NCBI RefSeq assembly: GCF_964204645.1
Contig: NC_134032.1
Coordinates: forward strand, 868,001-932,000
DNA length: 64,000 nucleotides
Origin: Tubulanus polymorphus
Lineage: Eukaryota > Animalia > Nemertea
Direction: 5' to 3'
Below are positions 7,519-62,558 of the stretch, piece after piece. The notes under the pieces were generated by a model that saw only the letters and a list, made by a program, of their open reading frames with translations, was not told the DNA's origin and searched no databases. The translations under genes were made by a program, and so were the position numbers. Each line of letters starts with the position of its first letter. Positions within the stretch are counted from its first letter, which is position 1.

Positions 7519-8956
7519 GACAGTAATACTGTGTGGTCGTGTACGCACACGATGAGGCAGTGCGCCCTATACGTGACGCACACGACGTAGCGCACACTAC
7601 TTAGTGTGACGAGAGAGCAAATACATGGCGTTACATAACTTTCCTTCTAGTATATAAACACGTTAATGATAGGGAAGCGTGAACAAGATATCATCCAGTA
7701 TTATTGTTAAACCGAAGTTGAGTCGCAGTCAAAAAAAAAACTCTCGTTTTTTTATGCGAAGTTGAGAGTTTAGTAATGTGCATTCTCCTTCGCCGGGATT
7801 CGAACCTGATGGCATCGAGAGACTCTGCCGATCAGCTGCGCGGGATTCGAACCCGGTGGCATCGAGATAATCTTGCCTTCTTTATAGAAAACCTGCTCTG
7901 GCAGCCAGCCTCGATCGCAACCAGAAAAATTAAAGCTTGAATATATAAATCACGCGTTGGCTAAAAATACAGCGAGCTGGTTTCGAAACAGTGAATTCGC
8001 CGATATTCAAATATATTCAGCTTTCGAGGAATAAGCGCAATCCGTTTTATCAATGACACTTTTCGCCGTCCTAAAAAAAAAAATATTTCGATTCCTTTAA
8101 TTTATATGTGTATGACTTGGTGGGCTGGGTTTAAATCGCTTGTGCACATTCCAAGAATAAATAAATGCTTATATATATATATATATATATATATATAATG
8201 ATAATATTAATTGATAGTAATAACCTATTTTGTAAATAATAATAGTCACAAGAAGAAGTTAGTGTAGTTTGATGATAGTCTAGATGCAATTGTTGAAATA
8301 TTGCATATAAATGTACATAGGTCAAACTGTTGGGATACGTTATGTTGACGGGGATCTTGTACGGGGGTTTATTCGTGCTTTGTACTTGTTTACTTTAAGA
8401 GATTGTTCACTCTAACGTTTTCGATCAGCTTTGGTCGATTCTTGTTCACGATGGCGAGATGATATCTTACCCGAATTGCGACGTTGATTTCAGTCGAAAT
8501 CGAGATCACCGATATGGTGTCGAATTCCGCAGTTTTGATGTCGTTACTAGGTTTTTAATCTCGCTTGACTTCGTTCAGATCTAGCTTTGCCGGGACTATA
8601 ATCGCGATTGGATTGTTCATTCAAACTCACCACGCGGTTTTGAGGTGAAAGCAGCCTGCGGGACTCGAACCCGGGACTGCCGGGTTTTAAATCGGCGCAT
8701 TATAGGTAAGTATCTAAACTCGCGACTGTGGAACTGTGACGCTTATGATTAAGATTGCAATCGTTACTTTGGTAAACATCGAGAAGAAGTATATCTGAGT
8801 TTAAGTTTAGTGGTTTCCAATATTTCAAGTCACATATCGGTGAACTGCATTCAGATACTTTTACTTTCAATGTTATATTCGTTCGGGTAGACTATCAATC
8901 GACACTGCTTTTTTTCTGTTTAAACGGTAAAATCGCTTTAAAAGTGGGAACTGCTA

Positions 8957-16900: not shown

Positions 16901-19900
16901 CCCTGTCTATTGGTACTGATTCTGAGTGTTCCTGATGCTGAATAGAGGATGTACAGGGGTGCCCAGGTTCGATCCTGGTCTATTGGTACTGATTCTGAGT
17001 GGTCCTGATGCTGAATAGAGGATGTATTGGCGTGCACCGGCCGTACGGTGCTGCCGCTATGCTCATCGTTAGCGGGTTTTTCATACACTAACGTAAGTCA
17101 ACTCTGGCAATCGACGTGCTCTCCAGTAATACTCCGTAACCCTTGCTTGCCAGAGTAGACTTACGTTAGTGTAGGCAAATCCCGCTAACAATGAGCATAG
17201 CGGTAGCACCGTACGGTAAAATTTTGATATCTTAACAAAAGTAATTTCTGGCACTTATTTAGAGTTGTCCTGATGCTGAACAGAGGATGTACAGGGTTGT
17301 CCCGGGTTCGATCCCGGTCTATTGGTACTGATTCTAAGTGGTCCTGATGCTGAATAGAGGATGTACAGGTGTGTCCTGGGTTCGATCCCGGTCTATTGGT
17401 ACTGATTCTGAGTGGTCCTGATGCTGGATAGAGAATGTACAGGGGCCTCCCGGGATCGATCCCGGTCTATTGGTACTGATTCTGAGTGTTCCTGATGCTG
17501 AATAGAGGATGTATTAGCGTGTACCGGCCGTACGGTGCTGCCGCTATGCTCATCGTTAGCGGGTTTTTCATACACTAACGTAAGTCAACTCTGGCAATCG
17601 ACGTGCTCTCCAGTAATACTCCGTAACCCTTGCTTGCCAGAGTAGACTTACGTTAGTGTATGCAAATCCCGCTAACAATGAGCATAGCGGCAGGACCGTA
17701 CGGTAAAATTTTGATATCTTAACAAAAGTAATTTCTGGAACTTATTTAGAGTGGTCCTGATGCTGAACAGAGGATGTACAGGGGTGTTCCGGGTTTGATC
17801 CCGGTCTATTAGAATTGATTCTGAGTGGTCCTGATGCTGAATAGAGAATGTACAGGGTCGTCCCGGGTTCGATCCCTGTCTATTGGTTCTGATTCTGAGT
17901 GGTCCTGATGCTGGATAGAGAATGTACAGGGTCGTCCCGGGTTCGATCCCTGTCTATTGGTACTGATTCTGAGTGGTCCTGATGCTGAATAGAGGATGCA
18001 CAGGCGTTTTCAGATTTCAAACCCATTAAACACTGGCACTTATTCAAAGTGGTACTGATGCTGAATAGAGGATGTACAGGGGTGTTCCGGGTTCGATCCC
18101 GGTCTATTAGTATTGATTCTGAGTGGTCCTGATGCTGAATAGAGGATGTCCAGGCGTTTCCAGATTTCAAACCCAGTAATTACTGGCACCTATTCAAAGT
18201 GGTCCTGATGCTGAATAGAGGATGTACAGGGGCCTCCCGGGATCGATCCTGGTCTATTGGTACTGATTCTGAGTGGTCCTGATGTTGAACAGAGGATGCA
18301 CAGGGGTGCCCAGGTTGGATCCTGGTCTATTGGTACTGATTCTGAGTGGTCCTGATGCTGAACAGAGGATGCACAGGGGTGTTCCGGGTTCGATCCCGGT
18401 CTATTAGTATTGATTTTGAGTGTTCCTGATGCTGAATAGAGGATGTATTGGCGTGTACCGGCCGTACGGTGCTGCCGCTATGCTCATCGTTAGCGGGTTT
18501 TTCATACACTAACGTAAGTCAACTCTGGCAATCGACGTGCTCTCCAGTAATACTCCGTAACCCTTGCTTGCCAGAGTAGACTTACGTTAGTGTATGAAAA
18601 TCCCGCTAACAATGAGCATAGCGGCAGGACCGTACGGTAAAATTTTGATATCTTAATAAAAGTAATTTCTGGCACTTATTTAGAGTGGTCCTGATGCTGA
18701 ACAGAGGATGTACAGGGGTGTTCCGGGTTCGATCCCGGTCTATTGGTACTGATTCTGAGTGGTCCTGATGCTGAATAGAGGATGTCCAGGGGTTTCCAGA
18801 TTTCAAACCCAGTAATTACTGGCACTTATTCAAAGTGGTCCTGATGCTGAATAGAGGATGTACAGGGGCCTCCCGGGATCGATCCCGGTCTATTGGTACT
18901 GATTCTGAGTGGTTCTGATGCTGGATAGAGAATGTACAGGGTCGTCCCGGGTTCGATCCCTGTCTATTGGTACTGATTCTGAGTGGTCCTGATGCTGAAT
19001 AGAGGATGTACAGGGGTGCCCAGGTTGGATCCCTGTCTATTGGTACTGATTCTGAGTGGTCCTGATGCTGAATAGAGGATATACAGGGGTGTCCAGGGTT
19101 CGACCCCGGTCTATTGGTACTGATTCTGAGTGGTCCTGATGCTGGATAGAGGATGTACAGGGTCGTCCCGGGTTCGATCCCTGTCTATTGGTACTGATTC
19201 TGAGTGGTCCTGATGCTGAATAGAGGATGTACAGGGGTGTTCAGGGTTCGATCCCGGTCTATTGGTACTGATTCTGAGTGGTTCTGATGCTGGATAGAGG
19301 ATGTCCAGGGGTTTCCAGGGTTCAAACCCAGTAATTACTGACACTCATTCAAAGTGGTCCTGATCTGAATAGAGGATGTACAGGGGCCTCCCGGGATCGA
19401 TCCCGGTCTATTGGTACTGATTCTGAGTGGTCCTGATGCTGGATAGAGAGTGTACAGGGTCGTCCCGGGTTCGATCCCTGTCTATTGGTACTGATTCTGA
19501 GTGGTCCTGATGCTGAATATAGGATGTACAGGGGTGCCCTGGTTCGATCCTGGTCTATTGGTACTGATTCTGAGTGTTCCTGATGCTGAATAGAGGATGT
19601 ATTGGCGTGTACCGGCCGTACGGTGCTGCCGCTATGCTCATCGTTAGCGGGTTTTTCATACACTAACGTAAGTCAACTCTGGCAATCGACGTGCTCTCCG
19701 TAATACTCCGTAACCCTTGCTTGCCAGAGTAGACTTACGTTAGTGTATGAAAATCCCGCTAACAATGAGCATAGCGGCAGCACCGTCCGGTAACATTTTG
19801 ATATCTTAACAAAAGTAATTTCTGGCACTTATTTAGAGTGGTCCTGATGCTGAACAGAGGATGTACAGGGGTGTTCCGGGTTCGATCCCGGTCTATTAGT

Positions 19901-22900
19901 ATTGATTCTGAATGGTCCTGATGCTGAATAGAGGATGTCCAGGCGTTTCCAGATTTCAAACCCAGTAATTACTGGCACCTATTCAAAGTGGTCCTGATGC
20001 TGAATAGAGGATGTACAGGGGCCTCCCGGGATCGATCCCGGTCTATTGGTACTGATTCTGAGTGGTCCTGATGTTGAACAGAGGATGCACAGGGGTGTTC
20101 CGGGTTCGATCCCGGTCTATTAGTATTGATTCTGAGTGGTCCTGATGCTGAATAGAGGATGTACAGGGGTGCCCAGGTTCGATCCTGGTCTATTGGTACT
20201 GATTCTGAGTGTTCCTGATGCTGGATAGAGAATGTACAGGGTCGTCCCGGGTTCGATCCCTGTCTATTGGTACTGATTCTGAGTGGTCCTGATGCTGAAT
20301 AGAGGATGTACAGGGGTGCCCAGGTTCGATCCCGGTCTATTGGTACTGATTCTGAGTGTTCCTGATGCTGAATACAGGATGTATTGGCGTGTACCGGCCG
20401 TACGGTGCTGCCGCTATGCTCATCGTTAGCGGGTTTTTCATACACTAACGTAAGTCAACTCTGGCAATCGACGTGCTCTCCAGTAATACTCCGTAACCCT
20501 TGCTTGCCAGAGTAGACTTGCGTTAGTGTATGAAAATCCCGCTAACAATGAGCATAGCGGCAGCACCGTATGGTAAAATTTTGATATCTTAAAAGTAATT
20601 TCTGGCACTTATTTAGAGTGGTCCTGATGCTGAACAGAGGATGTACAGGGGTGTTCCGGGTTCGATCCCGGTCTATTAGTATTGATTCTGAGTGGTCCTG
20701 ATGCTGAATAGAGGATGTCCAGGGGTTTCCAGATTTCAAACCCAGTAATTACTGGCACTTATTCAAAGTGGTCCTGATGCTGAATAGAGGATGTACAGGG
20801 GCCTCCCGGGATCGATCCCGGTCTATTGGTACTGATTCTGAGTGGTCCTGATGTTGAACAGAGGATGCACAGGGGTGTTCCGGGTTCGATCCTGGTCTAT
20901 TGGTACTGATTCTGAGTGGTCCTGATGCTGAATAGAGGATGTACAGGGTCGTCCCGGGTTCGATCCCGGTCTATTGGTACTGATTCTGAGTGTTCCTGAT
21001 GCTGAATAGATGATGTATTGGCGTGTACCGGCCGTACGGTGCTGCCGCTATGCTCATCGTTAGCGGGTTTTTCATACACTAACGTAAGTCAACTCTGGCA
21101 ATCGACGTGCTCTCCAGTAATACTCCGTAACCCTTGCTTGCCAGAGTAGACTTACGTTAGTGTATGCAAATCCCGCTAACTATGAGCATAGCGGCAGCAC
21201 CGTACGGTAAAATTTTGATGTCTTAACAAAAGTAATTTCTGGCACTTATTTAGAGTGGTCCTGATGCTGAACAGAGGATGTACAGGTGTGTCCTGGGTTC
21301 GATCCCGGTCTATTAGTATTGATTCTGAGTGGTCCTGATGCTGAATAGAGGATGTCCAGGGGTTTCCAGGGTTCAAACCCAGTAATTACTGGCACTTATT
21401 CAAAGTGGTCCTGATCTGAATAGAGGATGTACAGGGGCCTTCCGGGTTCGATCCCTGTCTATTGGTACTGATTCTGAGTGGTCCTGATGCTGGATAGAGA
21501 GTGTACAGGGTCGTCCCGGGTTCGATCCCTGTCTATTGGTACTGATTCTGAGTGGTCCTGATGCTGAATAGAGAGTGTACAGGGTCGTCCCGGGTTCGAT
21601 CCCTGTCTATTGGTACTGATTCTGAGTGGTCCTGATGCTGAATAGAGGATGTACAGGGGTGCCCTGGTTCGATCCTGGTCTATTGGTACTGATTCTGAGT
21701 GTTCCTGATGCTGAATAGAGGATGTATTGGCGTGTACCGGCCGTACGGTGCTGCCGCTATGCTCATCGTTAGCGGGTTTTTCATACACTAACGTAAGTCA
21801 ACTCTGGCAATCGACGTGCTCTCCAGTAAAACTCCGTAACCCTTGCTTGCCAGAGTAGACTTACGTTAGTGTATGAAAATCCCGCTAACAATGAGCATAG
21901 CGGCAGCACCGTCCGGTAAAATTTTGATATCTTAACAAAAGTAATTTCTGGCACTTATTTAGAGTGGTCCTGATGCTGAACAGAGGATGTACAGGGGTGT
22001 CCCGGGTTCGATCCCGGTCTATTAGTATTGATTCTGAATGGTCCTGATGCTGAATAGAGGATGTCCAGGGGTTTCCAGATTTCAAACCCAGTAATTACTG
22101 GCACCTATTCAAAGTGGTCCTGATGCTGAATAGAGGATGTACAGGGGTGTTCCGGGTTCGATCCCGGTCTATTAGTATTGATTCTGAGTGGTCCTGATGC
22201 TGGATAGAGGATGTACAGGGGTGTTCCGGGTTCGATCCCGGTCTATTAGTATTGATTCTGAGTGGTCCTGATGCTGAATAGAGGATGTCCAGGGGCCTCC
22301 CGGGATCGATCCCGGTCTATTGGTACTGATTCTGAGTGGTCCTGGTGCTGGATAGAGAGTGTACAGGGTCGTCCCGGGTTCGATCCCTGTCTATTGGTAC
22401 TGATTCTGAGTGGTCCTGATGCTGAATAGAGGATGTACAGGGTCGTCCCGGGTTCGATCCCTGTCTATTGGTACTGATTCTGAGTGGTCCTGATGCTGAA
22501 TAGAGGATGTACAGGGGTGCCCAGGTTCGATCCTGGTCTATTGGTACTGATTCTGAGTGGTCCTGGTGCTGAATAGAGGATGTGTTGGCGTGTACCGGCC
22601 GTACGGTGCTGCCGCTATGCTCATCGTTAGCGGGTTTTTCATACACTAACGTAAGTCAACTCTGGCAATCGACGTGCTCTCCAGTAATACTCCGTAACCC
22701 TTGCTTCCCAGAGTAGACTTACGTTAGTGTATGAAAATCCCGCTAACAATGAGCATAGCGGCAGCACCGTCCGGTAAAATTTTGATATCTTAACAAAAGT
22801 AATTTCTGGCACTTATTTAGAGTGGTCCTGATGCTGAACAGACGATGTACAGGGGTGTTCCGGGTTCGATCCCGGTCTATTAGTATTGATTCTGAGTGGT

Positions 22901-25900
22901 CCTGATGCTGAATAGAGGATGTCCAGGCGTTTCCAGATTTCAAACCCAGTAATTACTGGCACCTATTCAAAGTGGTCCTGATGCTGAATAGAGGATGTAC
23001 AGGGGCCTCCCGGGATCGATCCCGGTCTATTGGTACTGATTCTGAGTGGTCCTGATGTTGAATAGAGGATGTACAGGGGTGCCCAGGTTGGATCCTGGTC
23101 TATTGGTACTGATTCTGAGTGTTCCTGATGCTGAATAGAGGATGTATTGGCGTGTACCGGCCGTACGGTGCTGCCGCTATGCTCATCGTTAGCGGGTTTT
23201 TCATACACTAACGTAAGTCAACTCTGGCAATCGACGTGCTCTCCAGTAACACTCCGTAACCCTTGCTTCCCAGAGTAGACTTACGTTAGTGTATGAAAAT
23301 CCCGCTAACAATGAGCATAGCGGCAGCACCGTCCGGTAAAATTTTGATATCTTAACAAAAGTAATTTCTGGCACTTATTTAGAGTGGTCCTGATGCTGAA
23401 CAGAGGATGTACAGGTGTGTCCTGGGTTCGATCCCGGTCTATTAGTATTGATTCTGAGTGGTCCTGATGCTGAATAGAGGATGTCCAGGGGTTTCCAGGG
23501 TTCAAACCCAGTAATTACTGGCACTTATTCAAAGTGGTCCTGATCTGAATAGAGGATGTACAGGGGTGTTCCGGGTTCGATCCCTGTCTATTGGTACTGA
23601 TTCTGAGTGGTCCTGATGCTGGATAGAGAGTGTACAGGGTCGTCCCGGGTTCGATCCCTGTCTATTGGTACTGATTCTGAGTGGTCCTGATGCTGAATAG
23701 AGAGTGTACAGGGTCGTCCCGGGTTCGATCCCTGTCTATTGGTACTGATTCTGAGTGGTCCTGATGCTGAATAGAGGATGTACAGGGGTGCCCTGGTTCG
23801 ATCCTGGTCTATTGGTACTGATTCTGAGTGTTCCTGATGCTGAATAGAGGATGTATTGGCGTGTACCGGCCGTACGGTGCTGCCGCTATGCTCATCGTTA
23901 GCGGGTTTTTCATACACTAACGTAAGTCAACTCTGGCAATCGACGTGCTCTCCAGTAAAACTCCGTAACCCTTGCTTGCCAGAGTAGACTTACGTTAGTG
24001 TATGAAAATCCCGCTAACAATGAGCATAGCGGCAGCACCGTCCGGTAAAATTTTGATATCTTAACAAAAGTAATTTCTGGCACTTATTTAGAGTGGTCCT
24101 GATGCTGAACAGAGGATGTACAGGGGTGTCCCGGGTTCGATCCCGGTCTATTAGTATTGATTCTGAATGGTCCTGATGCTGAATAGAGGATGTCCAGGGG
24201 TTTCCAGATTTCAAACCCAGTAATTACTGGCACCTATTCAAAGTGGTCCTGATGCTGAATAGAGGATGTACAGGGGTGTTCCGGGTTCGATCCCGGTCTA
24301 TTAGTATTGATTCTGAGTGGTCCTGATGCTGGATAGAGGATGTACAGGGGTGTTCCGGGTTCGATCCCGGTCTATTAGTATTGATTCTGAGTGGTCCTGA
24401 TGCTGAATAGAGGATGTCCAGGGGCCTCCCGGGATCGATCCCGGTCTATTGGTACTGATTCTGAGTGGTCCTGGTGCTGGATAGAGAGTGTACAGGGTCG
24501 TCCCGGGTTCGATCCCTGTCTATTGGTACTGATTCTGAGTGGTCCTGATGCTGAATAGAGGATGTACAGGGTCGTCCCGGGTTCGATCCCTGTCTATTGG
24601 TACTGATTCTGAGTGGTCCTGATGCTGAATAGAGGATGTACAGGGGTGCCCAGGTTCGATCCTGGTCTATTGGTACTGATTCTGAGTGGTCCTGGTGCTG
24701 AATAGAGGATGTGTTGGCGTGTACCGGCCGTACGGTGCTGCCGCTATGCTCATCGTTAGCGGGTTTTTCATACACTAACGTAAGTCAACTCTGGCAATCG
24801 ACGTGCTCTCCAGTAATACTCCGTAACCCTTGCTTCCCAGAGTAGACTTACGTTAGTGTATGAAAATCCCGCTAACAATGAGCATAGCGGCAGCACCGTC
24901 CGGTAAAATTTTGATATCTTAACAAAAGTAATTTCTGGCACTTATTTAGAGTGGTCCTGATGCTGAACAGACGATGTACAGGGGTGTTCCGGGTTCGATC
25001 CCGGTCTATTAGTATTGATTCTGAGTGGTCCTGATGCTGAATAGAGGATGTCCAGGCGTTTCCAGATTTCAAACCCAGTAATTACTGGCACCTATTCAAA
25101 GTGGTCCTGATGCTGAATAGAGGATGTACAGGGGCCTCCCGGGATCGATCCCGGTCTATTGGTACTGATTCTGAGTGGTCCTGATGTTGAATAGAGGATG
25201 TACAGGGGTGCCCAGGGTTCCAACCCAGTAATTACTCACACTTATTCAGAGTGGTACTGATGCTGAATAGAGGATGTACAGGGGTGCCCAGGTTGGATCC
25301 CTGTCTATTGGTACTGATTCTGAGTGGTCCTGATGCTGAATAGAGGATGTACAGGGGTGCCCAGGTTGGATCCCTGTCTATTGGTACTGATTCTGAGTGG
25401 TCCTGATGCTGAATAGAGGATGTACAGGGGTGCCCACGTTCGATCCTGGTCTATTGGTACTGATTCTGAGTGTTCCTGATGCTGAATAGAGGATGTATTA
25501 GCGTGTACCGGCCGTACGGTGCTGCCGCTATGCTCATCGTTAGCGGGTTTTTCATACACTAACGTAAGTCAACTCTGGCAATCGACGTGCTCGCTCTCCA
25601 GAGGCCTTTTTATGAACACTCGATTAGTATATTCGAGTATGCAAAACGTTTTTATGAGCATGGATTATGTCATAATCCGTCATTTTTATGAACATTGGTT
25701 ATCATAATCGATTAGCATACTCAGCATACTCGCTCGGCGAGCAAGTATGCCGATTATCTAATCCAACCGAAATGGTGTTCTCGGTAGAAGTCGCTGCTGA
25801 GTAGGCCATAAGTGAATAATTTCTACCTGGCGTTTTTATCAACCAACATACCCGGTTATGCTAATTGACACTAATCGGCTATATAATCTAAATAGCTAAT

Positions 25901-26612
25901 CTATTTCGATTTTGCTGGTTCATAAAAAGGCCTCAGTAATACTCCGTAACCCTTGCTTGCCAGAGTAGACTTACGTTAGTGTATGCAAATCCCGCTAACA
26001 ATGAGCATAGCGGCAGCACCGTACGGCAAATCTTTGATGTCTTAACAAAAGTAATTTCTGGCACTTATTTAGAGTGGTCCTGATGCTGAATAGAGGATGT
26101 ACAGGGGTGTTCCGGGATCGATCCCGGTCTATTGGTACTGATTCTGAGTGCCGGGGTCCTGATGCTGGATAGAGAATGTACAGGGTCGTCCCGGGTTCGA
26201 TCCCTGTCTATTGGTACTGATTCTGAGTGGTCCTGATGCTGAATAGAGGATGTACAGGGGTGCCCAGGTTCGATCCTGGTCTATTGTTACTGATTCTGAG
26301 TGTTCCTGATGCTGAATAGATGATGTATTGACGTGTATCGGCCGTACGGTGCTGCCGCTATGCTCATCGTTAGCGGGTTTTTCATACATTAACGTAAGTC
26401 AACTCTGGCAATCGACGTGCTCTCCAGTAATACTCCGTAACCCTTGCTTGCCAGAGTAGACTTACGTTAGTGTATGTAAATCCCGCTAACAATGAGCATA
26501 GCGGCAGCACCGTACGGTAAAATGTTGATATCTTAACAAAAGTAATTACTGGCACTTACTCAAGGTGGTCCTTATGCTGAATAGAGGATGTACAGGTGTG
26601 TCCCGGGCTCAA
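10925..26612 (+). repeat. 15.6-kb compound satellite: ~150 monomers of 73-75 bp interspersed with 23 hairpin (MITE-like) modules
   Basis: Monomer gagtggtcctgatgctgaatagaggatgtacagggg...ggttcgatcc.ggtctattggtactgattct. Hairpin left arm starts at 11241 (truncated), 12120, 12697, 13109, 13594, 14161, 14573, 15285, 15697, 16186, 17041, 17528, 18462, 19616, 20398, 21032, 21741, 22599, 23161, 23870, 24728, 25512, 26342. Confidence 0.97.
25602..25933. mobile_element. PIF/Harbinger-type MITE inserted in the loop of hairpin copy 22
   Basis: Perfect 16-bp TIR AGGCCTTTTTATGAAC / GTTCATAAAAAGGCCT; 3-bp TSD CAG (25599-25601, 25934-25936); the empty site is visible in the other full hairpin copies. Confidence 0.9.
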
Positions 26613-28362: not shown

Positions 28363-31300
28363 TCAGTGTTTGTTTAGTTCTGTTAAAGGTATCGCAGGTC
28401 GACTGAAGTCTAATTCACCGTACAATCCGACGTCTTCCTCGGCGCCTAGGATCACTCGTGGAGCAGTACGCCCCCTAGAGGTGCTCGGTTGAAGCCTCGC
28501 GGTGTCCGGTCGGGACATGTTGTCTAGTCGTGCATAGATCGTCCCATCTTCACCGATATCCTGGAGACAAAAAAGATGTTTAATTATCTCGCAATTTATG
28601 CGGGTATTAACAACCGTTACCGCCCTCAGTGTGGACCCCTCACCCCCTCAGTGTGGACCCCTCACCCCCTCAGTGTGGACCCCTCACCCCCTCAGTGTGG
28701 ACTCCTCTGTCGAAACCCTGCACCCCCTCAGCCAGAAACTTGCATTCCCTTCAGATTGTTGAAGTGTTGGCTCCATGCTATAGATTGAGGGAGTGTGGGT
28801 GGCTCCACGCTATAGATTGAGGGGGTGTGGGTGGCTCCATGCGATAGATTGAGGGGATGTGGGTGGATCCATGCTATAGATCGAGGGGGTGTGGGTGGCT
28901 CCACGCTAAAGATCGAGGGGGTGTGGGTGGTTCCACGCTTTAGATCGAGGGGGTGTGGGTGGCTCCATGCTATAGATCGAGGGGGTGTGGGTGGCTCCAC
29001 GCTATAGATCGAAGGGGTGTAGGTTGTTCCATGCTATAGATCGAGGGGGTGTGGGTGGATCTAGGTCGGGATACAAACCTCAATATAAACACTTTCAGCC
29101 GTGAAATCATCATCTTCGGCATTCTCAACTAGAAAAAAAAAATACATTTCAGAAATAGAATCGGTTTAAGAAATTCAAAACGGATTCCGGCTGGACGCGA
29201 GGACCTGCGCGCGCACCTTCAATGAAACCGACACCAGCAGCAGGTGGAGTAGCTGGAGTAGATGGAGCAGCTGGAGGAACAGTTCGTCTGCCGATCCGAG
29301 CTACAAAACACAGAGAAATATCGCGTTATCACGGAGAATTCCGACGGAGTCAGTTAGGTCATTTCAAACATGTTAAAACACGAGTTACCACTAGCGCCAA
29401 CGGAACATTCATAAACGACATCCGGTTCAGAAACCACATCTGAAAAAAGAAATAGACGAATATTTAACAGTTCAGTGAAATCATCGCCACATTACAACCT
29501 GTCGTCTCTATATTTTGAGTCTCAATTTGTATTTCTAATTCATTTTACTAAGTGTAAGTCGTCATTTGGATAAGTCGTCACATTACTGAAGTCATCTCTA
29601 TTTTTTAACTCCTAATTCTTATTTCTGATTCATTTCACTCTAAGAGTTTCACTGTATTTCTCATCAACAGTAAACTTTTTTAGGTCAAGGACTCGATGAG
29701 TTTTAGGAATAGTTTGTTTCGGAATTAAGGAAGGACTAGTACCGGTACTAGTACTGAACTGTTCACTGCACTAGCCAAATCTACGGATTAGAACCTACAG
29801 TTTATAGTTAATTTACGGTTCATATGGTTGCCAGTTATTAAGAGTAAGACAAGAAAATAAGATAAAAACCCACTATCTACAAATTAAAAGAATTCAAAAA
29901 CAAGAATTAATTTATTCAATCTAAAATATATAGAATACTCGACGTTTCGATCTCACCCAAGATATCATCGTCAGGTGTCTGAGATCGAAACGTCGTGTAT
30001 TCTATATATATTTTAGATTGAATAAATAAATTCTTGTTTTTAAATTCTTTTTAATCTGTAAATAGTGGGATTTTATCTTATTATCCGTTCACCACGTTTG
30101 AGTGTGGTTATCGTTCTATTACAAGAAGTTTTGAGCACCAAATGATAGAACGATATCGGGTATTGTAATCAGGTCATCACACCTGACTGGTCACCACTCG
30201 ACTGTGATGATTGCTTAGGGCTAATTCCACACGTCTATGTCTTGCCTAGATCATAAATATTTGGTGATAATCTTCGAGTCTAAAAATTCATATTTCTAAT
30301 TCAATTTTCTAAGTGTAAGTCATCATTTGTATGAACTGTCAGCATCATTATCGGGTTCCTGACTAATATAGACAATCTCTAGATATTACAATAATTTATG
30401 CATGGAATATTCACTAGGTTCCGATGCTGATGAAACTGGATTTACAGCAATATTACGACATTGAGTGACGAGTTCTCAAACCCCGTGTAAAAGATAAACA
30501 ACAAACCAGTAGTATCCCTGTTATACATGTTTCTGCGGTGTATATACAACACGACCGTTACTACGATAATGATTGCGATCACAATTGTGAAACCGATTGC
30601 ACTGCCAACTGTTGCCCAGAAACTAGCCATCGCAGAACCAGCATTTTTAGAATCTGCAATTATATAAAACCCACCAGTATGTACACAGTTTCAAATTAAT
30701 TATTTTCGTGGCATTTTTGTTTCAAAAAAAAAAGTTTTTTGAGTAACATGATTTAATCGCGGTATTTATTTCGCAAATGAATGTAAACTTTCTAAACCTT
30801 TGGTGATCAATAAAAATAACTCACTTGATGTTGAGGTGGTTTCTGTGACTTGTGTCACTGTTGATGGTCCTACAATTATAAATATATATATGTTTGTTCA
30901 ATTTTAAAATGGTACCTAACCCAACCTGCAAGGGGCTCATGTAACCAATTGATTGTACACTTTTTAAACATCTGTAAAAATAACTCACTTGATGTTGAGG
31001 TGGTTTCTGTGACTTGTGTAACTGTTGATGGTCCTACAATGATATATTATGGATTTTGAATATGGTTCGACTCGTGGCGCCGCCGTGTTTTAACTGAAGT
31101 TCAAGTAACAGGACTTAGATTCAACTCCACACTATCAAACAAACTAACAACTTACGCAACCATTTTCGGGCTTAAGAAGTCACAACTGTGCAGGTTGTGC
31201 TACTCACCAAAACCTACAGTGTTTAACTCGATGTACTCATTGTGGTACTCACCAAACTGTACAGTGTTTAACTCGATGTACTCATCGTGGTACTCACCAA

Positions 31301-34300
31301 ACTGTACAGTGTTTTTTAACTCGATGTACTCATTGTGGTACTCACCAAACTGTACAGCGTTTAACTCGATGTACTCATTGTGGTACTCACCAAACTGCAC
31401 AGTGTTTAACTCGATTTACTCATTGTGGTACTCACCAAACTGTACAGTGTTTAACTCGATGTACTCATTGTGGTACTCACCAAACTGCACAGTGTTTAAC
31501 TCAATAAAAGCCACTTGATTCGATCTAATGTATGTGATGGCGGATGAGTAGATCATCGTTTTTGTTGTGTCAGCGACAAATTGTTGATTCGGGAAAATCT
31601 TACTGGAGATCATTGTGAACTACAATGAGAAAATCATCAGAGATAGATTTAAAAACCTGAGTGAGGTGTGAGGTGAGGGAGTGAGGAGAAGCGAGAGGGT
31701 ATGAGGAGGGTAGAGTAGAAGGGGAGATTGTGAGGGGTGAGGAGGTGAGAGAGTGAGAGGGTGTGAGGTGAGAGTGAGAGGGTGTGAGGAGGTGAGGGAG
31801 TGAGGAGTGAGAGAGTTAGTGAGGAGGTGAGGGAGTGAGAGGGTGTGAGGAGGGTAGAGTAGGAGGGGGATTGTGAGGGGTGAGGAGGTGAGAGAGTGAG
31901 AGGGTGTGAGGTGAGAGTGAGAGGGTGTGAGGAGGTGAGGGAGTGAGGAGTGAGAGAGTTAGTGAGGAGGTGAGGGAGTGAGAGGGTGTGAGGAGGGTAG
32001 AGTAGGAGGGGAGATTGTGAGGGGTGAGGAGGGGAGATTGTGAGGGGTGAGGAGGTGAGAGTGAGAGGGTATGAGGAGGGTAGAGTAGGAGGGGAGATTG
32101 TGAGGGGTGAGGAGGGGAGATTGTGAGGGGTGAGGAGGTGAGAGTGAGAGGGTATGAGGAGGGTAGAGTAGGAGGGGAGATTGTGAGGGGTGAGGAGGGG
32201 AGATTGTGAGGGGTGAGGAGGTGAGAGTGAGATGGTGTGAGGAGGGTAGAGTAGGAGGGGAGATTGTGAGGGGTGAGGAGGGGAGAGTGAGAGGGTGTGA
32301 GGAGGGTAGAGTAGGAGGGGAGATTGTGAGGGGTGAGGAGGGGAGATTGTGAGGGGTGAGGAGGTGAGAGTGAGAGGGTATGAGGAGGGTAGAGTAGGAG
32401 GGAGATTGTGAGGGGTGAGGAGGGGAGATTGTGAGGGGTGAGGAGGTGAGAGTGAGAGGGTATGAGGAGGGTAGAGTAGAAGGGGAGATTGTGAGGGGTG
32501 AGGAGGGGAGATTGTGAGGGGTGAGGAGGTGAGGGAGTGAGAGGGTGTGAGGAGGGTAGAGTAGGAGGGGAGATTGTGAGGGGTGAGGATGGCGGTGAGA
32601 GGGAGTAAGGGGAAGAGGGCAACTGGGAACCTGTATTACTTATTGTTCATCGAGAACTACAACAAGAAAATCATCAGAAACAAATTGTAAAATTTGAGAG
32701 AGGTGAGGGAGTGAGGAGGAAAGAGGGGTGAGATTTGTATTGATTATTTCAATCAATTCACCTGAAAAATGTAAATCGTTGATGATCCTCGATTCCAGAT
32801 AGCGACGCGAGTAGGTTGACCTATATTACGAGCAGGTTGACCTACATTACAGGTAGGTTGACCTAGATCACGAGTTTTGGTGGTTAGCATCTGTATCTGG
32901 TGACCTGTAGTGATGTGACCGAGTCGACTGAAACCAGATTGAACTCCATTCGATCCAAACAGATTCATATAAAGCTCCTCAGTTTCTTTATCAGTTTTAA
33001 TCTTGATTTTCCATTCAACTGAAACAATTAAAACTGTCATTAACAATCACTGTGTTTATAACTGATAGTTATATTCATCAATATTTGTGTTGAGAAATTC
33101 ATCAAATTCAGATCTAATTTTGCACCTTCTCTGGTTGTATTCGGGACCAGAGAAACTTCGTTGTAATCGTTTCTACCCAAGAGAACATTAAAACCGAAAT
33201 ACGTTTCAGTGACGTTATCAGATTTGAGTTCAACCTGAAATAATGTGCATAAACAAGTGTATAAACGACTGTGAATTCATTTTACCAGTCCGGACTACAG
33301 TTTAGGACTTATTGACAACTTACTCGTTTTAGGAACCACCAATTTTCTCCATATCCTGGTTCGCATTTTATTTTTACAGTTTTAGGTTTTCCAATATTTC
33401 TCGTGAAGATGATCACATCTTTTCGTTCTCTGTGTTCCCCGAATAGTGAACCTAGATATGTAAACTGTGATTCATTTCGGTCACCGATAATCTGAATATC
33501 AACTCTTCCACTGGTATAGTGTAACCTGGAACTACTCCGCTTGATTCCACTAAAAACAGCGATCTGCCATTTAACTAGAAATAACAGGAAAAAAATATGA
33601 CTTTTCACACTTGACCTCGATCTGTGAGGAGGGACCCTTTTACGACCTTTGAGGATAATTCAAACACCGGATAATCATCATTATCACCATTATTTCAGCG
33701 TGGAGCCTTAGTAGACTTTACACCTTGCCCGCTTGGGGCGTTAAGTTGCTCATAACTCAGGTTTTAAAAGAACAGGTTTGTTAGCCTAGGCTTACCGCCA
33801 CAGTCTAATTATAAGTTCAGTTCATAAGGTATTCTGCGTTCAATAATACGTTTTAACGAACCTGGTTTATGAATTCTTGATTGATAATTACAAGTCTTTG
33901 TGTCTGCATAGCTGTTAATACAGTTATACATGTACACAACATTGTCACCATCTATCACACCTACTAGCGCCACCTATTGAATATAAATATATGAGTTAAT
34001 ATCAAATTCACACCGGCCTCTCTCTCCCCTCCCTCTCCATATTTCTATAACCTGGATGACGCGCCAGTTTGTAGTCAGTGCAGTTTTCAGCATGAGTTTT
34101 CTCGGTGGATGTGGATTTGTGATGTTCACTGGTAACAACAGTTCGTGAGTCTTGTTTGACCCGGCCTTGAACTCGGTTCCCAGGTGGAAGTACGTGACGT
34201 CACTACCTGTCTCACCGAAACCTAACATGACAGTTTGTGTTGTACCTGTATCCCCTGTAAACACTATCACCTGCCAAACTGAACCAGAAAGAAATAACAA

Positions 34301-37300
34301 CTGATTTATGTGGTATCCATGGATCTCATCAGTTTCAGAATTTCGTTCAAATATTTCAGTTTTTACCATTTTTATCATTAAGCTATCTTTACCTTTCCCT
34401 CGTACAAACCGCCAGGACAGTTTGAACCCGACATAGTTTCTAGAGGTGTCTGATGTGAATTGTATTGTTATATTTCCAATGTATAATCGTTTACCAGGAG
34501 CTGTCCAGCCACAATACTTATCACTCCCTGATGAAGAAATAAATCTGATAAAACTTCATGAATCATAAAAATTATTCACGTTGTGAAGTGTTTAGATTTT
34601 TACCGGTTTCACTCCTTATCGTCAACTCGTCACAACAAACAACTTCACTTTTGGTCTCTATACGAAAATTCTTGTCAAATGATATTTCAACCAGCTGCAA
34701 AAATATATATATACGAACTTAGAATTAAATTATCATTCATTATCTATTTCAGGAACCGTTTATTTTGATCAATTTTAACTTAAACCCGGAATTATCGGTT
34801 AAACTAAATCCCGGGATAAGGTTAGACCTAATCTTAGCCCCATTGAGTTTCTACTAGTGCAAATATTACTCACTCCTGAGACCTGCTCGTGCAGAAATCG
34901 CGACAATATCATTTTTTTTTCTCTAGGATCAACATTTCACAAATATATATTTACCATGTTTTCAGGGGATTTAATTATCCAGTAACAGTTGTGGCCGGAA
35001 TAATAGTCGTCCGGATAATTGGGACTGGTAATGTAACCTGATGTATCATCCTGTACTCTAGGTTTCTTACTACAAGTCGAATCAACTACAAATAAATATT
35101 GAATTGAATTGTTTTATATGTGATTTACTGATTCCATGATAAACTTCTCATTATGAGCTACCTTTTAATATCCTCCAAATCAGTTTAAACCCTTTATAGT
35201 TTTCACTGTTGTCTGATCTAAACTGTATATACACATTACCGGTATAGAATAGTGTAGAGGGCGCTGTACTGCCACAATAGTACTTTCCCCTTACTGTAAT
35301 ACAATAATCATAATGATTCTAATATATCTTTATTCATCTCCACTTTTACTAAATAATTATTATATAAATACTGATAAAAGATGAAAGTTAAAAGTAAATA
35401 CACAAATATAATTCAGAGTTCAGTTTCACTGACAAGATTTAAAACCATTCTAAAGAGTGAAGACTATTTTTGGACTCATGCGAAATTAAATCATGATTTG
35501 TTTCGTAAAAAGAAAATAATGAAGAACGTAATTCGATTCTTACTCTCTATATAGTCAACGCAATACCCGTTATGTTTGGGCTGCAGGTCGAATGTTTCAA
35601 ACGATATTTTCAGTATCTGAAATAAAAATAATTTAGATTCATCGTTATTGAAATGTGTTCGCACCATTCTAACTGGTTGTAATCATTAAGGGTTAGCCCT
35701 ATTGATAATGAGTGATGTAATGTAATAGTTAAACAGTTCAGCACCCGATTGTCAGGTTCAAAGAGAAAAATATAAGTTCCGTTCCAAACTCGTACAAAAT
35801 GTGCTGACAAAAATATTCTTCCTAAAGCCCGGCGCAAACCTGTGCGATCGATCGTATGATTGCTTCATCACATGGTTTTATCGCTTCGCCGTAAAGGTAT
35901 GCGGTGGCATCCGGAGCCGATTACATCGCATCATCGCAACAAATCAAACATGTTCGATATTTTCGCATGCCATTTTTCCGTGCTATCAAAATCGTAAAGG
36001 TCTGCGGGCTACGCTGCCGATTTTCCGAACGAAGTTTTTTTTAGTAGCTTTTAGAAGTTTTTAGGGGATGATGCAATTTTCATTGTGTCATCGCATGCGA
36101 TGATATGATGATCGCAAAGGTGTGCGCACCCGGTTTAACAGTGAATATTTCTCACTCTTGAGATTCACAATTTCCTGTGTTTTATATTTACCGTGTTTAC
36201 AGGTACCGGAATCATCCATAAACAGTAATGGTTGTAACGATAACTGTCCGGAAACCCCGGACTAGTGATGTACCCTGATCTACCGGTCTGTTCTCTATAT
36301 GACCGACTACACGTTGAATCTGTGTTCTTGTCTGCTAATATAGAAAAAATATCAATGAACTTATACAGAAACTGCTGCCGCCTGATATCATGGCGCGGAA
36401 ATACTATCAAAATTAAAGCAGCAAATTAATTTTATTCAAAATTCTGTCTCATTTCACAACACATTTTATAGACATACGGCGCTGACTATTAGGGGTTAAG
36501 GTTAGGTTGAGGGCTGGTAAAAGATTCCGACTGTATTTGACTGTGCCACGGTGGTCTAGTAGTAAGTAACTGTGCCAGCGCTCGCAGGCCTCAGTTTCAA
36601 TACTGTTCTATTTTCTCTCCGCTGTATTTTCTGTACACATTTTTAAAGTCGCGCACCTCAGTGCGCATGCGCGGTGTAAATTAGCCAATCAGAGCGAGTT
36701 ATCGGCAAAATAGTGTTTACAGGAATAATTATGCTACGTCGGTGAATCATCGCTCGCCCCCAAAAACCTGACCTGGTCTGAATAAAGATGGCCGACTAGC
36801 GGCCATTATTCTTCGCTGAAATCCGCACTTTAACACATTCTAAAAATTTTTAAGGGAAATTTTAAAGATGCTTTGATCAGTTCATCTTTCTTACATTTGT
36901 ATCTCCCAAGCGCCGATCGGCTTACGAAATAGGTCGGTCGGCTGTGTGTGATCGTTTTGTTCCCAAAAAGGTCGACTGATTTTGGTTTCACCTTTTGCTC
37001 TACGATCCTAGACACTAGGTTCGCGGTGTAATTTATGCCTGAATTCAGAGACCTTCATCTATTCCTCGCTTGCAAGGGTTTGATTCCCTACCGCTAACAC
37101 AAACCCTTCAATCGACTACTATATTGCCTATGCTTTATTGAAATAAAAGAATTGCCCATGAAAACTGCTTGCTACAGGTCCGGAACAACGGGTCATATTG
37201 GCCATTTACTGAAGTAGAAAGTCACAGTTTTAACTGCTGTCAATGTGTAATGTATAAATGCGTCACGTCAAAATCTAATCTATTAATAGATTTACAATCA

Positions 37301-40300
37301 ACTTCCTATTTGATGTGATATATACGAATATGTGCTTGAAATCATTGAGAAAAATCATTTCAATCTATTTTGAATCTTGTGTTAAAATTAGCAGGACTGC
37401 AACCTATAAAAACTGCCATCAGTAACAAACTGAATTTTCTATTGAAATATGAAAGACAATTAATCAGTAATCGACAGTAAGACCCTCAGTAACATCTTTC
37501 ATATTTCTGTTCAAATTAATCAGTAATCAACAGTAAGACCCTCAGTAACATCTTTCATATTTCTGTACAAATTAATCAGTAATCAACGGTAAGACCCTCA
37601 GTAACATCTTTCATATTTCTGTTCAAATTGATCAGTAATCAACAGTAAGACCCTCAGTAACATCTTTCATATTTCTGTACAAATTAATCAGTAATCAACG
37701 GTAAGACCCTCAGTAACATCTTTCATATTTCTGTACAAATTAATCAGTAATCAACGGTAAGACCCTCAGTAACATCTTTCATATTTCTGTTCAAATTGAT
37801 CAGTAATCAACAGTAAGACCCTCAGTAACATCTTTCATATTTCTGTACAAATTAATCAGTAATCAACGGTAAGACCCTCAGTAACATCTTTCATATTTCT
37901 GTTCAAATTAATCAGTAATCAACAGTAAGACCCTCAGTAACATCTTTCATATTTCTGTACAAATTAATCAGTAATCAACGGTAAGACCCTCAGTAACATC
38001 TTTCATATTTCTGTTCAAATTGATCAGTAATCAACAGTAAGACCCTCAGTAACATCTTTCATATTTCTGTACAAATTAATCAGTAATCAACGGTAAGACC
38101 CTCAGTAACATCTTTCATATTTCTGTTCAAATTAATCAGTAATCAACAGTAAGACCCTCAGTAACATCTTTTATATATCTGTTCAAATTAATCAGTAATC
38201 GACAGCGAGACCCTCAGTAACATCTTTCATATTTCTGTTCAAATTAATCAGTAATCGACAGTAAGACCCTCAGTAACATCTTTTATATTTCTGTTCAAAT
38301 TAATCGGTAATCGACAGTAAGACCCTCAGTAACATCTTTCATATTTCTGTTCAAATTAATCAGTAATCGACAGTAAGACCCTCAGTAACATCTTTTATAT
38401 TTCTGTTCAAATTAATCAGTAATCGACAGTAAGACCCTCAGTAACATCTTTCATATTTCTGTTCAAATTAATCAGTAATCGACAGCAAGACCCTCAGTAA
38501 CATGTTTCATATTTCTGTTCAAATTAATCAGTAATCGACAGCAAGACCTGCAGTAACATCTTTCATATTTTTGTAAGCATCAAATCAAATCAGTATTTCT
38601 CTGGATAAAGAAGTAACAAATACTGAAAATCTAGAACAGTTCACAGTTCTGTATTAGTTCATCTTCGATGATTTAATCCTAGAATCATAAACTCAAGTGG
38701 AACTATGGAACTGGATGCTGATAATTATTAATCTAAATCTTTGAATAAAAGGATAGAGCCTGCACCAGTGGGGGGAGGGTTTATGAAGAGAGGATGCTAC
38801 AGTATCCTATCACAACCATGGAGGAGGGCGTGTTACAGGGATCCACACATCAGATATACTTGCAGTCTTCTATATCGTCTTCGGAGCCTCTGGCAATTTG
38901 AAAATTGATCATCAAACCCGACCCCAAATTTAATCATTAAGTGTATAAAATAAATCCTGGACCTTCGTAATCTGAATTGAAATACTCTATGATAAAGGAA
39001 CGATGACTGATATCTACCAGAATCTATTTATCACCTTGCCTTCCTTGTAAATGGTCTCTATTTTCGAAATAACTTAAAGCCCGGCGCACGCAAGTATTGG
39101 AGTCATCGAATCAACCTTTTTTGATCTCGTGACAAGTCGGGCAGCAGAGTTTTGGATAAGCCGCAACTTTTTTTTATATTGTACAGACTTGTACCAAGTA
39201 ACAGACTATTGCAGTAATCAAGTCTAGAAAACAATGAACTAATCTTTCTGTGATTGGATTATTTAAAAAATGTCTAATTTTGCCTATTTTGTAAAGACCA
39301 AAAGAAGCTGTCTTGCAGACTTGTTTAACATGGTGATCCATGGTCATATTGATGTCAAAATAATCACCCAGATTCCGTACCACTTTGCTAGGATGTATTG
39401 CACAATCTCCGATTTGTATAAACTCTAAAAACTCTGATCTACTTTTTCTTTGAGATTTTGAGGTAAAAACCATTAATCATTAGGTCATTAGACAGTAGAT
39501 CATTAGACAGTAGATCATTAGAACATTGAACAGTTCATCATAGTAGTGTTACATAACAGTAACATAACAGTTCATCAGTAGATCATTAGACAGTAGATGA
39601 TTAGACAGTTCGTCATTAAATCATTAGACAGTAGATCATTAGAACATTGAACAGTTCATCATTAGATTATTAGACAGTTGATCATGAGTGGAAAAGGATA
39701 AAACAATGATATTATAAATAAAAAATTATAAATAAAATATTATAAATTAAAAAAAATAAATAAAATAAATAAAATAATAAATAAAAATAATTAAAAAAAT
39801 AATTAAAAAAAAAGATCATTGGGCAGTTCATCATTAGATCATTAGACAGTAGATGATTAGACAGTTCATCATTAAATCATTAGACAGTAGATCATTAGAA
39901 TATTGAACAGTTCATCATTAGATCATTAGACAGTTGATCATTAGATCTTGGACAGTAGTTGGAAGCTAGAACTTTACTTCGGGTTTGAAAAACAGTATTG
40001 TTACTATCATAAGATCATTAGACATTTAAATAACTGGAACATGAAACAACAAACAACGGATTATTAGAACATTAGACATCAGATTAGACAGTTGATAATT
40101 GCATTTTAAAATATGGATCAAAACCTCTCCTTATTGTCTATAGTTCTAGATTATCTGTGACTTGCATCTGAATACATCAATTAATTAAAAATGATGTAGA
40201 TAATAAGGAGAGTGCCTCCTAGGTCGTCGGAGCGTTGAATCAAACGTGAGAATGAATCCATTGACATCGATCGCCCAGAGATATTGATATAAATATGCGC

Positions 40301-40365
40301 TTACCAAGAGAATTCCCGACGTATAAAAATACAGCGACTACAAACAAACTCTTCATCGACGCCAT
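28363..40365 (-). CDS. Type I membrane receptor: SP-CUB-CUB-PLAT-PLAT-PLAT-Thr-rich stalk-TM-tyrosine-motif tail (~826 aa, 20 exons)
   Basis: Exons (minus): 40365-40305 (MASMKSLFVVAVFLYVGNSL); 36334-36192, 35616-35544, 35293-35162 (CUB1); 35085-34955, 34694-34604, 34527-34393 (CUB2); 34278-34052, 33973-33862; 33574-33324, 33234-33126; 33018-32762, 31619-31481 (PLAT-like x3); 31033-30989, 30869-30825 (stalk); 30653-30507 (TM); 29439-29389, 29300-29217, 29128-29079, 28560-28363 (tail, TGA). All introns GT-AG, phases chain without frameshift, total 2481 nt. CUB motifs GYITSPGFP/GYITSPNYP, YCG, F.SD...GFKL are clear; the PLAT assignment is by pattern only. Confidence 0.85.
28623..29060. repeat. 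Adjacent 22-bp (C-rich) and 32-bp (G-rich) minisatellites in the receptor's last intron
   Basis: ccctcagtgtggacccctcacc x~3.5; ggctccatgctatagatcgagggggtgtgggt x~9. Confidence 0.9.
29856..30118. mobile_element. Penelope-like terminal repeat, family 2, as an inverted pair with a hammerhead motif
   Basis: ~100-bp inverted arms around CTGACGA-T-GATATC-ttgggt-GAGATC-GAAAC-GTC (minus); homologous to 54981-55205. Confidence 0.65.
31195..31503 (-). repeat. 45-bp tandem repeat spanning a splice donor, 7 copies
   Basis: Unit gagttaaacactgtacagtttg|gtgagtaccacaatgagtacatc. Confidence 0.9.
31658..32620 (+). repeat. ~960-bp purine-rich (GA) low-complexity repeat
   Basis: gaggggagattgtgaggggtgaggag... 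almost devoid of C. Confidence 0.9.
35826..36135. mobile_element. Harbinger-like MITE (TAA TSD)
   Basis: TAA|AGCCCGGCGCAAACCTGTGCGATC...GATCGCAAAGGTGTGCGCACCCGGTT|TAA. Confidence 0.55.
37458..38572 (+). repeat. 56-bp minisatellite, ~20 copies
   Basis: aattaatcagtaatcaacagtaagaccctcagtaacatctttcatatttctgttca. Confidence 0.95.
39090..39473 (-). mobile_element. Degenerate CR1/L2-group LINE ORF2 C-terminal fragment
   Basis: VRNLG.YFD.NMTM..HV..VCKTA...L.KIGKIR.FL....TERLVH, then frameshifted LDYCNSLL and IQNSAARLVTR. Confidence 0.8.
39475..40095 (+). repeat. Low-complexity tagatcattagacag repeat with an A-rich block
   Basis: Direct inspection. Confidence 0.7.
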
Positions 40366-40392: not shown

Positions 40393-40427
40393 AACTGTGA
40401 ACCACTAACAAAAACTGTGTTTATATA
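40393..40427 (-). promoter_or_regulatory. TATA box plus initiator core promoter of the receptor gene
   Basis: TATATAAA at 40427-40420 and Inr-like CAGTT with A at 40396 (spacing -31), 31 nt upstream of the ATG. Confidence 0.6.
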
Positions 40428-47058: not shown

Positions 47059-47989
47059 CATACGAATATTAGTGTTCCGTTTATGAGGATTGGTTTATGT
47101 TTCTAAGGATTATCTGGTCGAGGTTGTTCCAGGATTGACAGTAGTTCCAATTTCATGTAGTCATAACGTGGCTCATTTCATATCATTCTGTAGTTCAGTT
47201 TTCTCACTTTGTTTCTAGTCTCTTTCTAGTGTCTGTAAATCTTACTGTGAAGTTGTCACTTGCAGTGTATTTTTATGAGTGTTCTCAAACAGTGGATCAT
47301 TTAGTGAGTTGAATTGACTGTAGACGGCAGCACTAGCTGGTTAACGCATACATATCTCAAAACATCCTACAAACCAGTTTAATAAATTCCATCAAAATAG
47401 GATTAGATGTTTATAGATCCCTCTAATAGTTGATATATTGTAAATAGTGGATGTTTGTATCATTAACAACTTTGTTATATTTTATCGAGAAAAGTTCCTA
47501 ATTCCTAATACATTATTTTACCTATTCCGTTCACTCATAACATTATAATTTTATTGGCGTTTACTGTTAAAATTTGAATTTCTGGCGATTTGTTTACAAA
47601 TATTTTCACGAATTAAGAGAAAAATAAAAACATTTCAATGAAAAACATAACAAGGTTATTTACAATATATACAAATACATGTACTATTTACTAAAACACA
47701 CGACAGACAGAAGGATAGAGATTAGACTGGTTGCCGGTCTCTTATTACCGATTAGATTTATACAATTAAACCAGTCTTACCTGTGTTTGAGGAGATTGAG
47801 ATCCACTTACGTCCAGCACTATTCACAGAAGGCGAAATCAATTGACAGATTAAACGTCTGAATGAGTTGTCAATCATAAATCAAACTCCGCCTAAAATAG
47901 AAAATCATACATAACACAATAAGAAGTGTTAACACACGAGAGAGGGCCGTAATCTGGCGTGGACGTGTAATTTTTAAAATCTTTTTTTC

Positions 47990-61900: not shown

Positions 61901-62558
61901 GCAATACTTGATTATCATTAATGACACACGGGGATCCCATACATGGATTAAATGTTAAGTCGCAATCTTTCATCCAGATCAAACCAATCCGTTCTGCTTC
62001 TGGTGTTAGATACAATAATCTGTGTGTATGCATACAGTAGAGAAACATCCGTCCCTTTGAATCGACATCTAAACAGTTGATATATTTGTAATCTCCATCC
62101 GGGAGCTGATATTTCTTCACTCGGTTTCTATCAATCAATTTGTTTACAGGGTTTTCTATTAAACGTAAAACATGAACGTCACTAAATAACTGTATATAGA
62201 TATTGTGATCACGGATCACTAAGGATACACAGCCTCCAGGCAGGAGATTGATATTTTCTTCGAGGAGTTTTCTCTGATTTTTATATTTTCTCAGGATGTA
62301 TTCACTGTTTTTCCACGCGAGTACATTCAGAAACCCGTTACCATCAGCAGCGAGTCCATGTATCCAACCATCAATCTCTATGTATCTCTGTTTATTATCA
62401 CCATTCACACTATATATATAATCAATGGAGTTATACTGCGCACATATAACACGTGACTGTTCACCCACGTGTTCACCGGGTATTGACGTCATCAGTTCGG
62501 GTCTGAAGTCTGTATCTACCTGTTTATTCAGCGTCAATGAATCGATTTTCGCTTCCAT
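58937..62558 (-). CDS. Caspase-3/7-like protein with an N-terminal beta-propeller-like region; catalytic His segment absent (inactive caspase or disrupted allele)
   Basis: Exons 62558-61430 (...[19 protein letters not shown]...R.GT.FDV..L..VF..LGFEV), ~60343-60227 (GDKVIGTDG...[11 protein letters not shown]), 59518-59395 (ACRG...[16 protein letters not shown]), 59154-58937 (YVSWRN...GSWFIQTLC...KQMPC...LRKDLYF, TAA). Confidence 0.85.
60495..61230 (+). repeat. 34-bp G-rich minisatellite, ~21 copies, inside caspase intron 1, bordered by a short hairpin
   Basis: gggtggatacaggtggattgaggagtaatagtca; hairpin CTAATACAC...GTGTATTAG at 61230-61256. Confidence 0.95.

Follow-up and report, generated by a model that had tools for sequence, protein, structure and literature searches.

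We conclude that the genome of Tubulanus polymorphus, a palaeonemertean (Nemertea), encodes a real and undescribed receptor architecture, in which two CUB domains and three tandem units of predicted PLAT fold precede a single transmembrane (TM) segment, and that this family so far comes from one species. The CUB loops of the family have diversified, two tail types occur on shared ectodomains, and genes with the two tails are found together in three tandem pairs. Judged from their sequences, these genes are a good candidate for a paired recognition-receptor family.

Gene structure and transcript support

The gene lies on the minus strand of the window, by which we mean the whole 64-kb stretch that was analyzed (C8:868001-932000, C8 being the window's own contig). 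It runs from an ATG at 40365 to a stop codon ending at 28363 through 20 exons, with GT-AG introns throughout and zero internal stops. With donor 33862 in the second exon of PLAT unit 1, the 826-aa product is identical to XP_074656138.1 (RefSeq isoform X3 of LOC141909575), which bears out the intact 20-exon frame with TM segment and stop proposed in the first-pass annotation; an alternative donor at 33892 was dropped, as 33862 gives this identity. Use of a NAGNAG acceptor at 36331 gives the 825 aa of RefSeq isoform X4. The gene is almost invisible among open reading frames, as the same annotation held, though NCBI already carries it as LOC141909575 under the product name "uncharacterized." A splice-site scan agreed with the earlier description of three-exon CUBs (phases 1-0-1-1) and two-exon PLAT-like units (1-0-1), so that phase-1 introns flank all five domains. 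The promoter and signal peptide claimed earlier fared less evenly: exon 1 is signal-like by eye, and the promoter is reduced to a TATA-like word. The features are as follows (window positions; PLAT-unit exons are written U1a to U3b below).

40420..40427 (-): putative promoter, a TATA-like word ~60 nt before the ATG, from sequence only
40305..40365 (-): exon 1 with the start codon and a signal-peptide-like segment; 95-100% identity in four close paralogs
47782..47877 (-): first coding exon used instead in RefSeq isoform X2, without a clear signal peptide
35162..36334 (-): CUB1 (exons 36334-36192, 35616-35544, 35293-35162); Pfam CUB and transcript joints; hypervariable loops
34393..35085 (-): CUB2 (exons 35085-34955, 34694-34604, 34527-34393); Pfam CUB and transcript joints
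33862..34278 (-): PLAT unit 1 (exons 34278-34052, 33973-33862); predicted fold, Z 9.9 to lipase PLAT
33126..33574 (-): PLAT unit 2 (exons 33574-33324, 33234-33126); predicted fold, Z 11.0 to 5-lipoxygenase PLAT
31481..33018 (-): PLAT unit 3 (exons 33018-32762, 31619-31481); predicted fold, Z 9.1 to alpha-toxin C-domain
30825..31033 (-): Ser/Thr-rich stalk, two duplicated 45-nt exons; S+T 51%
30507..30653 (-): transmembrane exon; hydropathy 3.0, helix uncharged, then basic residues
29079..29439 (-): three short tail exons (29439-29389, 29300-29217, 29128-29079); RefSeq match, paralogs
28363..28560 (-): last exon with TIYARLD and LYGELD, and stop; 91-97% identity in C8 paralogs

Several repeats surround PLAT unit 3. 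A GA-rich repeat (31673-32605) sits in its intron, and part of the U3b acceptor region recurs on the far side of that repeat (32610-32730 versus 31600-31700); this second copy ends in a stop and therefore looks like a decoy acceptor. Exon U3a contains an in-frame 21-bp tandem repeat (32808-32875), and a 45-bp repeat copies the U3b donor about seven times (31195-31502).

Four sequencing runs from a single study were compared with positions 32620-36450, long repeats being left out. Run X2, whose kind is not on record, behaves as the RNA-like one of the four: at seven predicted introns it shows joints with CT..AC ends, and a further three loose ends carry sequence of the following exon, among them those from the signal exon to CUB1a and from U3a to U3b. 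Support for the predicted junctions thus extends to 10 of the first 12, CUB2a-2b and U1b-U2a being absent among the matches listed. Many X2 contigs differ from the gene by 3-10% and so derive from paralogs; one 369-nt contig across CUB1a has no differences. This is a real, intact, spliced ribbon-worm gene, with some of its junctions supported via paralogs.

CUB domains and PLAT-fold units

The identity of the CUB domains is certain. Their exons score 25.7 and 30.3 bits against Pfam CUB (PF00431; cut-off, 21.4), the cysteines are invariant, and the best PDB match of the pair is cubilin (E 3e-35), with cubilin, neuropilin, and PCPE as the nearest solved CUB pairs. The calcium-binding CUB subtype is defined by acidic Glu/Asp/Asp ligands in the loops; both Asp positions are present here, and the Glu position is Gln in CUB1 and variable among paralogs.

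The PLAT assignment comes from structure prediction. Against PF01477, unit 2 scores 19.5 bits (E 0.0017), under the gathering cut-off of 23 bits, units 1 and 3 have no match, and single-exon Pfam searches found no PLAT; the gene's locus is not among the loci listed by a genome-wide PF01477 scan. Profile and sequence searches of the PDB with the units returned chance matches only, hhalign linked unit 1 to unit 2 weakly (Prob 20, E 0.0012), and language-model features gave PLAT values of 0.82-0.89, taken as a lead only. Sequence searches with the gene model were run one exon at a time, whereas work on several exons together (alignments, folds, and searches) drew on NCBI records (P0001, P0010, and P0017), that of the window gene among them. 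Fold models were built from such records without a PLAT template or PLAT sequence. For the three-unit model (pLDDT 45), the top eight fold matches are all PLAT (lipase, lipoxygenase, alpha-toxin, and R6IP1), with best Z of 9.9 for unit 1 and 9.1 for unit 3 and the next unrelated fold at 7.5. Unit 2 folded alone (pLDDT 60) gave nine PLAT matches at Z 8.4-11.0, with the first unrelated fold at 7.0, and TM scores of 0.63-0.71 to Atlas PLAT clusters. The beta-sandwich suspected in the first-pass annotation was therefore recovered for all three units, in low-confidence models with best Z of 9.1-11.0. On these models, the three units have eight-strand PLAT topology, although their sequence scores stay below the Pfam cut-off.

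Their position between signal peptide and TM segment, five N-glycosylation sequons, and a Cys pair in the last hairpin of unit 1, kept in all paralogs, are consistent with an extracellular location of the PLAT units. Units 2 and 3 are basic (pI 9.6).

A lineage-restricted family with two tails

About 12 loci, most of them on C8, carry exons of unit 1 or 2, and the PLAT-bearing paralogs have one to three PLATs and one to four CUBs. An assembly haplotig artifact was rejected as the source of the copies: a single contig carries them at megabase distances, and their exon content is not the same. The window gene and at least five PLAT-bearing paralogs share the tail with TIYARLD and LYGELD. A second tail type, with a different TM segment and a short acidic tail (DVYEDI-x7-YDDV), belongs to genes at C8 3.114 and 4.144 Mb; the gene at C8 2.268 Mb has the start of the acidic-type TM segment and is broken. 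The window protein shares 89% identity with the 3.114-Mb gene in PLAT1 and 46% in the TM segment, the tail value of 31% being alignment noise, whereas with the 3.142-Mb gene the values are 84%, 89%, and 91%. Near-identical ectodomains are thus carried on different tails, which is one of the criteria for paired receptors.

The tandem pairs are at C8 2.268/2.331, 3.114/3.142, and 4.144/4.122 Mb (acidic type named first). All three have the acidic-type gene 22-63 kb upstream of the ITIM-like gene on the same strand, and they may be copies of one ancestral pair. Two of the three acidic-type partners (2.268 and 4.144 Mb) are broken. The former (L009/L010) has a frameshift in U2a and has lost its tail, and the latter (L002) has everything upstream of mid-U1a lost or interrupted. 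An acidic-tail partner for the window gene was not found within the 64-kb window.

Among the copies found, only the window gene combines three PLAT units with the ITIM-like tail. At C8 3.142, 3.522, and 4.122 Mb (L007, L005, and L006), a single deletion takes U2b and half of U3a, so that U2a splices to U3b and yields a hybrid PLAT; a divergent gene on C12 is built alike, with two units. Several paralog isoforms (RefSeq records P0007, P0012, P0013, and P0023) are without the TM exon, and soluble forms may therefore exist. Tail-exon copies without a nearby PLAT match were seen at C8:4473943-4474134, C6:19050150-19052058, and C6:2.22-2.52 Mb, and a distant relative of unit 1 lies behind two CUBs at C9:11070639. 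Six more C8 genes consist of runs of closely related CUB exons with a tail match 1.0-1.5 kb away; from this spacing, which leaves no room for PLATs, relatives with no PLAT seem to exist. For the 2.331-Mb, 4.474-Mb, C6, C9, and multi-CUB loci, the description draws on RefSeq proteins and the coordinates of matches.

Two protein searches, of 1.84 and 5.8 billion sequences, yielded T. polymorphus relatives only and no CUB-PLAT receptor of another species, which upholds the earlier claim that the CUB2-PLAT3-TM architecture is restricted to this lineage; as query length and shared words restrict the reach of these searches, absence in other species is not proven. P0004, a repeat protein of a beetle, and P0006 looked like relatives but were discarded as low-complexity noise. 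The literature searched contained neither a CUB-PLAT receptor nor a paper on a CUB-PLAT family. On these searches, CUBs with tandem PLATs in a single-pass receptor are therefore not a known family, in line with the first-pass annotation, which did not recognize the arrangement.

Tyrosine motifs of the tails

The motifs of both tails lie near known consensus sequences. The window-gene tail has zero matches to the strict ITIM [ILVS]xYxx[ILV] and one to the extended ITIM/ITSM (shuffle P 0.26), where TIYARL fits (V/L/I/S/T)xYxx(I/L/V) (PMC11460946). The double YxxLD gives P 0.0004 for a motif picked after being seen. The tail of a C6 paralog reads TIYARI, a strict ITSM. The acidic tail departs from the strict ITAM, Yxx[IL]x6-12Yxx[IL], in that YEDI-x7-YDDV ends in Val, and it fits a relaxed ITAM at P 0.023. 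DVYxxV is the "core-2" motif of Botryllus FcoR, a co-receptor paired with an activating receptor (PMC12582321).

Diversification of the CUB loops

Genomic alignment of five copies shows that the CUB exons are 10-24% divergent, whereas the introns between them differ by 3-4% and the PLAT exons by 4-8%. The contrast of CUB exons with introns reaches p 1e-8 to 1e-32 for older pairs, and near-identical duplicates already have 14/339 differences in CUB1 exons versus 9/1216 in introns (p 5e-5). With loops delimited by CUB family anchors, 41 of 47 loop columns are variable, compared with 69 of 194 in the framework (p 7e-11), and the variation is concentrated in three loops. These loops are the ligand-binding end of CUB domains. 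Their changes include indels that are in-frame only, and reading frames and splice sites are kept. Loop pN is 0.32-0.43 and pS 0.10-0.36, with pN/pS of 1.2-3.2 (p < 0.05, uncorrected, in three of six non-independent pairs).

For the CUBs as a whole, dN/dS stands at about 1 without significantly exceeding it, PLAT dN/dS is also about 1, and dS is raised in the CUB exons too. Gene conversion of introns or relaxed constraint therefore contributes to the pattern, and, given the raised dS, the effect of selection may be augmented by old exon variants whose introns have been converted. Informative sites are mosaic, and since the runs test for recombination gives P 0.056 after thinning, this mosaicism is suggestive only.

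Proposed role and alternatives

The family, its diversifying CUB loops, and its two tail types, all of which go beyond the first-pass annotation, are stronger clues to function than the lipid binding suggested by the PLATs. Our preferred reading, which we judge about evenly balanced between right and wrong, is that the gene encodes an inhibitory-type member of a young, diversifying family of paired recognition receptors, a type I membrane protein in which the PLATs would act as stalk modules. Each CUB would use its three loops, grouped at one end, to bind a variable self or foreign macromolecule, and the one to three PLATs and the Ser/Thr stalk would set height and presentation rather than specificity. 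Upon engagement, a Src-type kinase would phosphorylate TIYARLD and LYGELD, 38 residues apart, and the two phosphotyrosines could then dock both SH2 domains of an SHP2-type phosphatase. The docked phosphatase would damp the signal of the acidic-tail relatives, whose DVYEDI-x7-YDDV might use Syk/Shark- or Nck-type docking. The likeliest setting would be innate immunity or self/non-self recognition.

Other readings were weighed. CUB domains work in fertilization, as in spermadhesins and sea-urchin EBR1, and gamete recognition, with fast-evolving CUB loops binding sperm or egg coat proteins and tails that signal to activation, would be expected to leave the same pattern of CUB diversification. We think it unlikely, however, as diversity among many paralogs in one genome, together with two tails, fits repertoire recognition better. 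Less likely again is a cell-identity or neuronal adhesion code, with homophilic binding by the paralogs and SHP2 docking as the source of a positive developmental signal. SHP2 docking can indeed activate (Gab/DOS type), we take the tandem YxxLD of the window-gene tail to resemble Gab/DOS sites, and cubilin, neuropilin, and PCPE are the closest solved structures; yet the protein searches found no orthologue in another species, several copies are broken, and such fast turnover is unusual in developmental wiring genes.

The first-pass annotation had proposed a lipid- or membrane-sensing receptor, that is, PLATs that sense lipid, an opposing membrane, or lipoprotein, with the CUBs as accessories. 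The secreted PLATs of lipases and alpha-toxin attach to lipid surfaces, and the modeled PLAT fold, which appears real, and the basic charge of units 2 and 3 would suit such a role. The proposal went unsupported, however, and we regard it as improbable, because PLAT number varies from one to three among close paralogs, with multi-CUB relatives that, by their spacing, seem to have no room for PLATs, because the variable surface lies in the CUB loops, and because the PLATs are membrane-proximal, less variable than the CUBs, and carry the five sequons. Least probable is that a recently amplified family is drifting under weak constraint and that patchy gene conversion makes the exon/intron contrast, as ectodomain dN/dS near 1, broken copies, and mosaic sites would allow, since change is focused in anchor-defined loops, indels keep the frame, splice sites are intact, and even near-identical duplicates differ more in CUB1 exons than in introns.

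Relation to known systems

A paired recognition receptor of this kind would share much with the paired ITIM/ITAM families (KIR, LILR, SIRP, and Siglec of vertebrates, Alr, and FF/FcoR), namely, clustered paralogs, a variable distal ectodomain, alternative tyrosine tails, and mixing of ectodomains and tails. Hydractinia Alr (10.1101/2022.03.04.482883) and Botryllus FF/FcoR (PMC12582321) are the precedents. In contrast to them, the CUB-PLAT genes have an ectodomain of CUB and PLAT rather than Ig or lectin domains, near-consensus motifs, an uncharged TM segment, and the motif within the tail. Because there is no Ig or lectin fold and the strict motifs fail, we place the family outside known paired-receptor families.

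Lipoxygenases, lipases, the alpha-toxin C-domain, LOXHD1, PKD1/REJ, and CCp3/LAP1 have the same eight-strand beta-sandwich that is modeled for the PLAT/LH2 units here (Z 9-11, rmsd ~2.7-3.0), at 7-21% identity to the window-gene PLATs, which remain below the Pfam cut-off. What differs is the arrangement of one to three tandem copies in a single-pass receptor ectodomain. The PLAT of PKD1/REJ is cytosolic; those proteins have REJ, GPS, and many TM helices, whereas the window gene has one TM segment with its PLATs before it and is not a member. Extracellular PLATs as such have a precedent in Plasmodium CCp3/LAP1, which is secreted and adhesive and carries an LH2 domain (PMC10892792).

Cubilin, neuropilin, NETO, and PCPE have the tandem CUB pair in common with the window gene but are without PLAT units and a tyrosine tail. 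Pfam searches of the paralog records found CUB only (no EGF, coagulation-factor, MAM, or LDLa), and the gene's precomputed domains are likewise CUB only. Within T. polymorphus itself, multi-CUB receptors with an acidic tyrosine tail (C8 11.9-16.3 Mb) have CUB exons among the closest in the genome, and their tails show a weak match to the acidic type (58-61% over ~48 aa); unlike the window gene, they have two to eight CUBs and apparently no PLAT.

Hydractinia and Botryllus supply most of the paired tyrosine-motif receptors described so far outside vertebrates, and those have Ig-type ectodomains. A nemertean CUB-PLAT version, if true, would extend the notion that wiring of the ITAM/ITIM type is redeployed with whichever binding fold is available. 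In a phylum with little-studied immunity, it also provides named genes for testing, and it adds a new setting for the PLAT fold that domain databases miss. We consider it possible, though we lean against it, that this is a lophotrochozoan activating/inhibitory system built independently from CUB and PLAT, with a germline repertoire for self/non-self recognition and the first tandem-PLAT ectodomain of a signaling receptor.

Other features of the window

Exons of a GATA transcription factor lie at 2067-7520 (+), with a zinc finger (Pfam GATA, E 1e-16) that is GATA4/5/6-like by eye; GATA words upstream of the receptor gene are not enriched within the window. A 393-codon open reading frame at 61377-62558 (-) combines a long unassigned N-terminal part with the beginning of a caspase domain (E 5e-14). 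A satellite of about 15 kb (11335-26327) is built of 73- to 74-bp units with higher-order periods of 371-487 bp.
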